27,427 bases of DNA, taken from positions 1-27,427 of the forward strand of contig NIVC01005063.1 of assembly GCA_002269645.1 (NCBI GenBank), given 5' to 3'. Both the position numbers and the translations under genes were made by a program. Shown one piece after another: positions 4,166-21,721 of this stretch. Under the pieces are notes generated by a model that saw only the letters and a program-made list of their open reading frames with translations, ran no database searches and was not told the DNA's origin. The stretch is from Macrostomum lignano. Lineage: Eukaryota. Position 1 is the first letter of the stretch, and every line of letters starts with the position of its first letter.

Positions 4166-4394
4166 ATGGGCTCGGCTCCTTCCCAGTCTCGACCTCAATC
4201 GGCCGCCGCCACCGATAGCAGCAGCGGAGTCAATCAGACATCAAAGCCGCCGCCTCCGCCAGCGTCCAGGACAGTCAGCGCTCGAAGCTACGCTGACAGA
4301 GGCAGATCGGCAACGGCGGTACAGCACTTGACCATCATGCCAAACAGACAGTACTCGCCTGAACAGCTTGAGAATCGCATGAAATGGCGAGACG
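4166..4394 (+). CDS. Large gene exon 1 (MGSAPS..., myristoylation-type start)
   Basis: AAAATGG start context; donor G|GTGCGT; phase 1. Confidence 0.8.

Positions 4395-21721: not shown

Follow-up and report, generated by a model that had tools for sequence, protein, structure and literature searches.

A large modular gene in the window

We analysed the complete contig NIVC01005063.1 of the flatworm Macrostomum lignano (assembly GCA_002269645.1), a stretch of 27,427 nucleotides referred to below as the window. It carries a 20-exon gene on the plus strand, whose product joins up to seven predicted cupredoxin-like modules to a CHB_HEX_C/Fn3_assoc-like domain and six FN3 domains. Across the window, GC-rich blocks of 100-1,000 bp alternate with AT-rich sequence and long tandem arrays, and this layout of GC-rich blocks and AT-rich gaps is the eukaryotic exon-intron pattern. 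The gene model was built by hand, by joining open frames through canonical GT..AG sites with matching phases. It extends from an ATG at 4166 to a TAA stop at 21719-21721, with GT..AG borders and consistent phases throughout, and yields a product of 1,972 amino acids (aa), or of 1,983 aa if the upstream acceptor of exon 15 is used. An earlier note, made from the letters of this DNA alone, had placed a gene of 20 exons and about 1,980 codons at 4166-21721, and the stitched model bears out these coordinates; the idea that the literal sequence codes without interruption did not hold, for exon 9 changes frame and a stop, TAG, stands at 10647-10649. We consider it highly probable that the locus is one real protein-coding gene of M. 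lignano with the following architecture.

4166-4394, plus strand: exon 1; ATG, MGSAPSQ, Ser/Pro/Ala-rich N-terminus (aa 1-77), probably disordered
4558-4634, plus strand: exon 2; opens the block of exons 2-8, cupredoxin-like D1-D4 (aa 79-535)
4727-5151, plus strand: exon 3; D1-D4 block
6228-6275, plus strand: exon 4; D1-D4 block
6356-6445, plus strand: exon 5; D1-D4 block
6870-7035, plus strand: exon 6; D1-D4 block
7735-8143, plus strand: exon 7; D1-D4 block
9399-9559, plus strand: exon 8; D1-D4 block
9645-10705, plus strand: exon 9; D5 (9645-9977), D6 (9978-10223), D7 (10224-10565) and, from 10602, the start of the CHB_HEX_C/Fn3_assoc-like domain
11941-12159, plus strand: exon 10; remainder of the CHB_HEX_C/Fn3_assoc-like domain and a short acidic linker
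12669-12962, plus strand: exon 11; opens the block of exons 11-13, with FN3-1, FN3-2, an Ala-rich stretch and a Lys/Glu-rich (K/E-rich) linker
13189-13465, plus strand: exon 12; same block as exon 11
14364-14816, plus strand: exon 13; same block as exon 11
15518-15751, plus strand: exon 14; acidic linker, 234 nt, 78 codons, phase-symmetric
16575-17084, plus strand: exon 15; linker, then the opening part of FN3-3
17592-18254, plus strand: exon 16; opens the block of exons 16-18, with the end of FN3-3, FN3-4, FN3-5 and the first half of FN3-6
18642-18777, plus strand: exon 17; same block as exon 16
18845-19018, plus strand: exon 18; same block as exon 16
21005-21299, plus strand: exon 19; second half of FN3-6 and a Ser/Ala/Gly/Arg-rich tail
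21693-21721, plus strand: exon 20, the proximal terminal exon; ...NRLKTAKRR and stop, acceptor ttttgcag, phase fitting exon 19

The 5' part of the model agrees with deposited sequences. An in-frame TAG sits 9 nt 5' of the ATG at 4166, and the protein deposited for this contig, PAA46087.1 (hypothetical protein BOX15_Mlig016419g4, 869 aa, annotated at 4166..10649), uses the same start; it is identical at every residue to exons 1-9 of the model. The translation of exons 2-8 matches the deposited P0006 exactly. For exon 6, an acceptor at 6819 was replaced by 6870 on the evidence of the deposited NCBI model, which likewise starts an exon there. The locus is further covered, in part, by two sister contigs of the same assembly: NIVC01003469.1 (L001; 99.05% identity), which begins at window position 9641, and NIVC01003366.1 (L002; 97.6-98.7% identity), which begins at 10631 and bears a deposited gene of 1,920 aa over the same region. 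Several near-identical copies of the locus are present in M. lignano. The description of the gene as unrecognised in the earlier note therefore stands as regards characterised families and not as regards the databases, where the gene already has entries as a hypothetical protein, cut short on this contig and complete on the sister contig.

Two single-base deletions interrupt the literal reading frame

Exon 9 passes from frame 2 to frame 1 near 10628-10646. The resulting stop explains why the GenBank coding sequence ends at 10649 and why 10650-19500 is left unannotated. At 10636-10639 the window reads GGGG where L002 has GGGGG, L001 carries an additional G at 10628, and two independent UniRef models, P0002 and P0003, remain open through the site. 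We found no acceptable intron that would repair the frameshift: an 89-nt 'intron' at 10542-10630 was rejected because it would cost D7 its final strand, and all that the sister contigs show is one extra base. A second deletion of 1 nt lies at about 16617, in exon 15, relative to both sister contigs. Supplying the extra base brings the well-formed acceptor at 16575 into frame, the arrangement seen in P0003; in the literal sequence, the only in-frame acceptors are 16607 and 16622.

In the exons that the contigs have in common, 3 substitutions and 2 single-base indels separate the window from L002; for L001 the tally is 3 substitutions and about 25 indels. Because indels far outnumber substitutions and fall in homopolymer contexts, which is a signature of long-read consensus error, error is favoured over pseudogenisation. 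The Band_7 gene near the contig's left end, described below, is likewise broken across three frames. The frameshift on this contig is thus most likely a long-read homopolymer error rather than biology, as judged from these sequence comparisons. In L001 itself, positions 1-1067 (window 9641-10705) differ from the window by 12 single-base indels and no substitutions inside one exon, and reading frames at the contig ends of assembly GCA_002269645.1 appear unreliable.

A cupredoxin-like array without a type-1 copper site

The N-terminal half of the protein contains an internal repeat that was aligned as seven units (alignment A1), with identities of 18-27%. An AlphaFold2 (AF2) model of D1, computed with the seven repeats as the alignment, has a mean pLDDT of 73.7 and a pTM of 0.68. 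When this model was compared with the PDB by Foldseek, all of the top 50 matches were cupredoxins (E 2e-4 to 3e-3, TM 0.44-0.62), including pseudoazurin, plastocyanin, Cupredoxin_1, amicyanin, CuA domains, EfeO and NirK. The structure was predicted for D1, and the other repeats are tied to it by alignment A1 and by a leave-one-out test, in which D1, D3, D4 and D5 each exceeded 2,000 of 2,000 shuffles, D2 and D7 reached p of about 0.05, and D6 p of about 0.3. A profile of the seven repeats searched against all PDB sequences gave plastocyanins as 7 of the 10 best matches, with end-to-end alignments and E values of 0.03-1.7, a marginal but coherent result. In Pfam, single repeats had no relevant match at E<=10 and the full protein had no cupredoxin match at E<=1, and the sole NCBIfam match of the 869-aa protein was to a halocyanin domain (E 0.022; 14.8 bits, where the cut-off is 93.8). 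Membership of a cupredoxin family at the sequence level (Copper-bind, Cupredoxin_1 or halocyanin) was tested against curated thresholds and no match rose above them; plastocyanins of the PDB scored E 0.03-0.08 with the repeat profile. Taken together, the predicted structure and the weak profile matches support the assignment of a cupredoxin-like fold, as the earlier note had proposed; its count of seven modules is generous, with four strong repeats, two marginal ones (D2 and D7) and D6 unsupported.

The ligands of type-1 blue copper are not retained. At the position of the plastocyanin Cys, D1-D7 have C, T, D, W, L, A and I, so that only D1 has a Cys; at the position of the His, they have I, S, A, N, D, A and E, with no His in any repeat. 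No conserved N-terminal copper-ligand His was found in alignment A1 or in the HMMER alignment to plastocyanin, and the His/Cys/His/Met set is kept by 0 of the 7 repeats. With the type-1 ligands lost, the modules would therefore be structural or binding units and not redox centres.

CHB_HEX_C-like domain, FN3 domains and the charged spacer

Between D7 and FN3-1 lies a segment (aa 855-932, spanning 10602-12069) whose only Pfam matches are Fn3_assoc (E 0.014; 16 bits, cut-off 23) and CHB_HEX_C_1 (E 0.023; 15.1 bits, cut-off 22). A phmmer search of the PDB with this segment gave no match, and a single-sequence AF2 model of the CHB-like domain with FN3-1 had a pLDDT of 45 and was unusable. The name 'CHB_HEX_C-like', also taken from the earlier note, is plausible in that related Pfam families top the matches of the segment, both of them under the gathering threshold.

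The FN3 domains are on firmer ground. Only fn3 is reported by Pfam for the whole protein (50.2 bits against a cut-off of 25, E 3e-13), which places the protein in PF00041. Taken singly, four of the six units match fn3 at E 0.004-0.008 (FN3-1, E 0.006, and FN3-4, FN3-5 and FN3-6); FN3-2 by itself matches Ig_RIMBP2 only (E 0.18), and FN3-2 and FN3-3 are supported through the alignment only. In the alignment of the six units (A3), a Trp is invariant in all six, and the corresponding profile retrieves titin and fibronectin from the PDB at E 4.5e-18 to 1e-13, titin being the best match (E 4.5e-18). FN3-2 and FN3-3 are separated by a spacer of about 290 residues, of which about 100 are K/E-rich and about 80 acidic. 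In the linker rich in K and E (aa 1206-1303, 14522-14815), K makes up 23% and E 19% of the residues, and the 78-residue Ala/Asp/Glu-rich exon 14 contains 17% D and 12% E. Both the six FN3 domains and the succession of a K/E-rich and an acidic linker between the second and third had been read from the DNA in the earlier note; domain searches support the former and composition confirms the latter.

Relatives of the protein

Exon 9 (333 aa, D5-D7) was used as the query of an exhaustive phmmer search of 1.84 billion cluster representatives, which returned three M. lignano proteins and one weak bacterial match. The latter, a repeat protein of 4,383 aa (E 4.9e-7, 32% identity over 70 aa), was judged to reflect compositional or generic beta-repeat similarity and was set aside. 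At the sensitivity of HMMER and with this query, the N-terminal array would thus be confined to Macrostomum. The UniRef model P0003 is 94% identical over exon 9, and there are therefore at least two paralogues or subgenome copies. A literature search for the domain combination retrieved bacterial (enzyme) papers only. No characterised family with this combination was found, and the statement of the earlier note that the protein cannot be assigned to a characterised family remains valid.

Alternative terminal exons and a possible cassette exon

The 1,920-aa gene deposited on L002 ends at L002:14069, which corresponds to window position 23545 and lies beyond the range considered in the earlier note. 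Because this model ends in a distal exon, the gene has two candidate terminal exons, the proximal one listed above and the following:

23472-23545, plus strand: distal alternative terminal exon; 74 nt, encoding ...NLNAFVDLFAKICDRLLTSVLTGQ and stop, acceptor tttcactttcag, phase as for exon 19

Use of the distal exon would replace the basic ...NRLKTAKRR ending by a short and possibly amphipathic C-terminus, ...NLNAFVDLFAKICDRLLTSVLTGQ. When exon 14 is removed from our model and the distal terminal exon is added, the product is exactly 1,920 aa long, the length of the deposited product of the sister contig, which suggests an isoform that lacks exon 14 and uses the distal terminal exon. An exact-sequence look-up of the reconstructed 1,920-aa sequence gave no match; the N-terminal exons of that contig are possibly different. 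Exon 14 may accordingly be a cassette exon that alters the charge of the spacer.

A nested scramblase gene, tandem arrays and the contig ends

Intron 19 (19019-21004) of the large gene houses a second gene on the same strand, one that the earlier note leaves unmentioned:

19517-20278, plus strand: phospholipid scramblase-like gene, single exon, 252-253 aa

Its open reading frame matches Pfam Scramblase PF03803 above threshold (E 1.9e-9; 37.6 bits against a cut-off of 25.4) over profile positions 94-220 of 221, and is 100% identical to 'hypothetical protein BOX15_Mlig012151g2', whose UniRef name is 'Phospholipid scramblase'. It is annotated at 19520..20278 on this contig, and is found as a separate 252-aa protein on three contigs. 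Towards its N-terminus the protein has an acidic stretch, and towards its C-terminus a hydrophobic segment. The large protein does not include this frame, which is a separate nested gene.

Long tandem arrays fill many of the large gene's longer introns:

5173-5775: (TAGT)x151
7036-7457: 11-mer x39
8253-9309: 12-mer x88
10828-11917: 12-mer x93
12193-12594: 17-mer x24
13485-14242: 19-mer x41
14863-15410: (ACAG)x137
16048-16453: 39-mer x10
17104-17523: 24-mer x18

The 12-mer arrays of introns 7 and 9 look related (TGAGACAGGCAC and AGACACTGAGAC). Long spurious open reading frames arise from the arrays on either strand; those at 8051-9325 and 10749-11966, for instance, head a prokaryote-style list of such frames by size. 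Downstream of the gene, (TCTG)x122 at 24209-24696 is the reverse complement of the (ACAG)x137 array of intron 13, and the two therefore represent one microsatellite family in opposite orientations, about 9 kb apart.

Minisatellites of 20-21-mers and 10/40-mers occur at both ends of the contig (window 6, 716; 1514-2120; 25343-26075; 26758-27208). The contig seems to terminate within tandem arrays, which may explain why the assembly breaks there. Near the left end, at 755-1430 on the minus strand, fragments of a Band_7/SPFH (stomatin-like) gene are spread over three overlapping frames; two of them match Pfam Band_7 (E 5e-7 and 0.007), and the third has the motif 'YERAVVFRLGR...GPGLFF'. The split would mean that assembly error has shifted the frame close to the end of the contig, or else that the copy has decayed. 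An Rfam scan of the window gave no matches.

One intact gene or several transcription units

Three alternatives to a single intact gene with the architecture given above concern the structure of the locus. The annotation of this contig, which covers 4166..10649 and leaves 10650 to 19500 bare, would fit two separate genes, one for the N-terminal cupredoxin-like array and one for the C-terminal FN3 domains. This arrangement is very improbable, given that the CHB_HEX_C-like domain spans the break, that a single base present in the sister contigs brings the frame back, that a sister contig carries the deposited 1,920-aa single gene, and that the UniRef models P0003 and P0007 connect the N- and C-terminal halves, which are not divided by any ATG-initiated open reading frame or promoter-like gap. 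Alternatively, the copy on this contig could be a genuinely frameshifted allele or paralogue. Its sole product would then be the 869-aa cupredoxin-like array, or its transcripts would undergo nonsense-mediated decay, and intact copies elsewhere would supply the full protein. The literal stop at 10647-10649 is, after all, also the end of the deposited coding sequence, M. lignano possesses several near-identical copies, and P0007, derived from another assembly, also reads ...AEDAGNR before splicing round the site. However, both deletions fall in G/C runs, the excess of indels over substitutions between contigs is large, L002, P0002 and P0003 read through, and the downstream exons of the window are fully open and nearly identical to those of L002 (3 substitutions, exons 17-18), so that we regard a frameshifted allele as unlikely. 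The least credible of the three, to which we attach almost no weight, is that the scramblase frame serves as an alternative 3' coding exon, producing an isoform in which the FN3 array is fused to a scramblase domain. Although this frame is on the same strand, lies inside the gene and ends with a stop, it opens only at 19487, and neither of the two AG sites 5' of its ATG (exon starts 19501 and 19515) is in phase with exon 18, which is why we read it as a nested gene and not as an alternative coding exon; it also has an ATG of its own and the separate deposits on three contigs. A single gene, with the nested scramblase gene in its intron 19, therefore remains our reading of the locus.

Cellular location and a proposed role

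The first 40 residues of the protein are polar, with no hydrophobic N-terminus, and hydropathy over the whole protein reveals no transmembrane helix, the maximal 19-residue Kyte-Doolittle mean being 1.31, inside beta-strand segments. The absence of a signal peptide and of an obvious transmembrane helix, and the MGSAPS start, were thus read correctly in the earlier note. By reading of the sequence, MGSAPSQ satisfies the pattern for N-myristoylation. The corresponding PROSITE pattern PS00008 is G-{EDRKHPFYW}-x(2)-[STAGCN]-{P}, with a Met-Gly start, a permissive position 3 and Ser/Thr at position 6. N-terminal myristoylation is accordingly a candidate modification, and the suggestion of an intracellular, membrane-anchored scaffold, for which the missing signal peptide and transmembrane helix and the N-terminal pattern speak, is a reasonable hypothesis.

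Our overall picture is that of a cytoplasmic modular spacer or scaffold whose N-terminus is weakly tethered to a membrane, a tentative picture that we hold at slightly less than an even chance. The Met-Gly start, which is followed by about 75 disordered residues, would carry a myristate that tethers one end of the protein to a membrane, weakly or reversibly. Next would come up to seven copper-free cupredoxin-fold modules, the CHB-like domain, two FN3 domains, the spacer, four further FN3 domains and a short tail with two alternative endings. The beta-sandwich modules, as a rod, could bind partner proteins, and the charged spacer could set a distance. Such a protein might act like the intracellular FN3/Ig proteins of muscle and cell cortex. 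The scaffold role is proposed by analogy with these proteins, titin being the best FN3 match; as a statement of cellular function, a membrane-tethered cytoplasmic spacer or scaffold is possible but doubtful.

Among the main competitors is an extracellular or cell-surface protein, such as a matrix, adhesive or cuticular-type structural protein, that has a missed 5' exon or is exported unconventionally. Secreted proteins and the surface proteins of bacteria often contain Cupredoxin_1, CHB_HEX_C_1/Fn3_assoc and fn3; the M. lignano protein has 45 cysteines, and its FN3 matches in the PDB include fibronectin, tenascin and receptor ectodomains. On the other hand, an upstream exon is difficult to reconcile with the in-frame TAG 9 nt 5' of the ATG, as there is no pyrimidine tract or plausible acceptor between them, and the deposited model starts at the identical ATG. 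The cysteines are irregularly distributed over the repeats (3, 4, 3, 5, 2, 1 and 4) with no conserved pair, the top FN3 match is the intracellular titin, and long spacers of K/E-rich and acidic composition are a typical trait of proteins of the cytosol. On balance, we find an extracellular location improbable, if worth keeping in mind. In a far more specific version of the cytoplasmic picture, the protein would belong to a Macrostomum-restricted family in which the cupredoxin, an ancient fold of electron carriers, has lost its metal site and been repeated to form a rod; joined to FN3 domains and anchored by an N-myristate, it could serve as a lipid-tethered scaffold of the ciliary or cortical membrane in the multiciliated flatworm epidermis. 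The small residues that follow Gly2 (G-S-A-P-S) resemble the N-termini of myristoylated ciliary cargoes of the UNC119 literature, such as NPHP3 and cystin; nevertheless, we rate this version as very unlikely.

Several points weigh against the cytoplasmic scaffold and the gene model on which it is built. The sequence support for cupredoxins lies below threshold in every library, and D6 is without support as a repeat in the leave-one-out test. Myristoylation is pattern-only, and no second membrane signal, be it a basic cluster or a Cys, is present near the N-terminus. Extracellular and bacterial surface proteins are more usual carriers of cupredoxin-like, Fn3_assoc/CHB_HEX_C and FN3 domains than proteins of the cytosol are. 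The 4-G, frameshifted reading of exon 9 recurs in P0007, a UniRef model from another assembly. The mature mRNA may also differ from our model by skipping of exon 14, by the use of either terminal exon, or by the choice of acceptors for exons 6 and 15. Finally, neither Mlig016419 nor Mlig012151 was found in a full-text literature search or in the supplements of three M. lignano papers.

If the architecture and the cytoplasmic location hold, the protein would represent an unusual reuse of the cupredoxin fold, as a copper-free structural repeat in an animal cell, joined to FN3 domains. It would also be a large lineage-restricted protein in a flatworm amenable to transgenesis and RNAi, so that its role would be directly testable. 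Large 'hypothetical' proteins limited to one lineage are frequent in flatworm genomes, and the module types of this one are known; what is unusual is the tandem array of metal-free cupredoxin modules in an apparently cytosolic animal protein. The gene opens no long-standing question, and its function is a proposal. Of more immediate use, the public annotation of the contig can be corrected, in that the gene is truncated there at a probable homopolymer error, with a second one at about 16617, which leaves about 1,100 residues unannotated; the same-strand nested scramblase gene and the two alternative terminal exons are further results of the analysis.

Comparison with known proteins

The closest sequences are deposited versions of the same gene or of near-identical copies, namely PAA46087.1, the 1,920-aa gene of NIVC01003366.1 and UniRef A0A1I8IMI5, A0A1I8IQT3, A0A1I8IR04 and A0A1I8FLA7. 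These models are unnamed or bear automatic and mutually inconsistent names (REJ, Ig-like, FN3 and SHR-BD domain-containing), none of them describes the cupredoxin-like array, and the model of this contig ends at the frameshift.

With the type-1 blue copper proteins (plastocyanin, pseudoazurin, amicyanin and halocyanin), the N-terminal modules share a predicted Greek-key beta-sandwich, with TM values of 0.5-0.6 to pseudoazurin and plastocyanin. The alignment to plastocyanin runs end to end and includes the common motifs 'V.V...gF.P..l.v..Gd.V.w' at the N-terminus and 'F...G.Y.F......V.V' at the C-terminus. However, the copper ligands are not conserved here and the sequence scores stay under every family threshold. 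Furthermore, whereas the known blue copper proteins are single-domain electron carriers of the periplasm or a lumen, here up to seven modules stand in tandem in an animal protein that is about 2,000 aa long and lacks a signal peptide.

The putative domain that follows recalls the accessory modules of bacterial surface proteins and glycoside hydrolases (CHB_HEX_C_1, PF13290, and Fn3_assoc, PF13287) by its motif '...V.vyfTTDGS.P...s......pi.l......i.A.a......S......f', directly N-terminal to FN3. It differs in scoring 15-16 bits against cut-offs of 22-23 and in belonging to an intron-rich, eukaryotic gene, and no bacterial relative was credited in the exhaustive search made with the neighbouring exon 9. 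The C-terminal half is reminiscent of intracellular FN3/Ig scaffolds such as titin, myomesin, MyBP-C and the cytoplasmic FN3 pairs of integrin beta-4, which also have FN3 domains in tandem, no signal peptide and long charged or low-complexity spacers between blocks. In contrast to the titin-type scaffolds, with which no orthology was detected, the M. lignano protein has no Ig domains, kinase or myosin-binding motifs, and its N-terminal half is cupredoxin-like.

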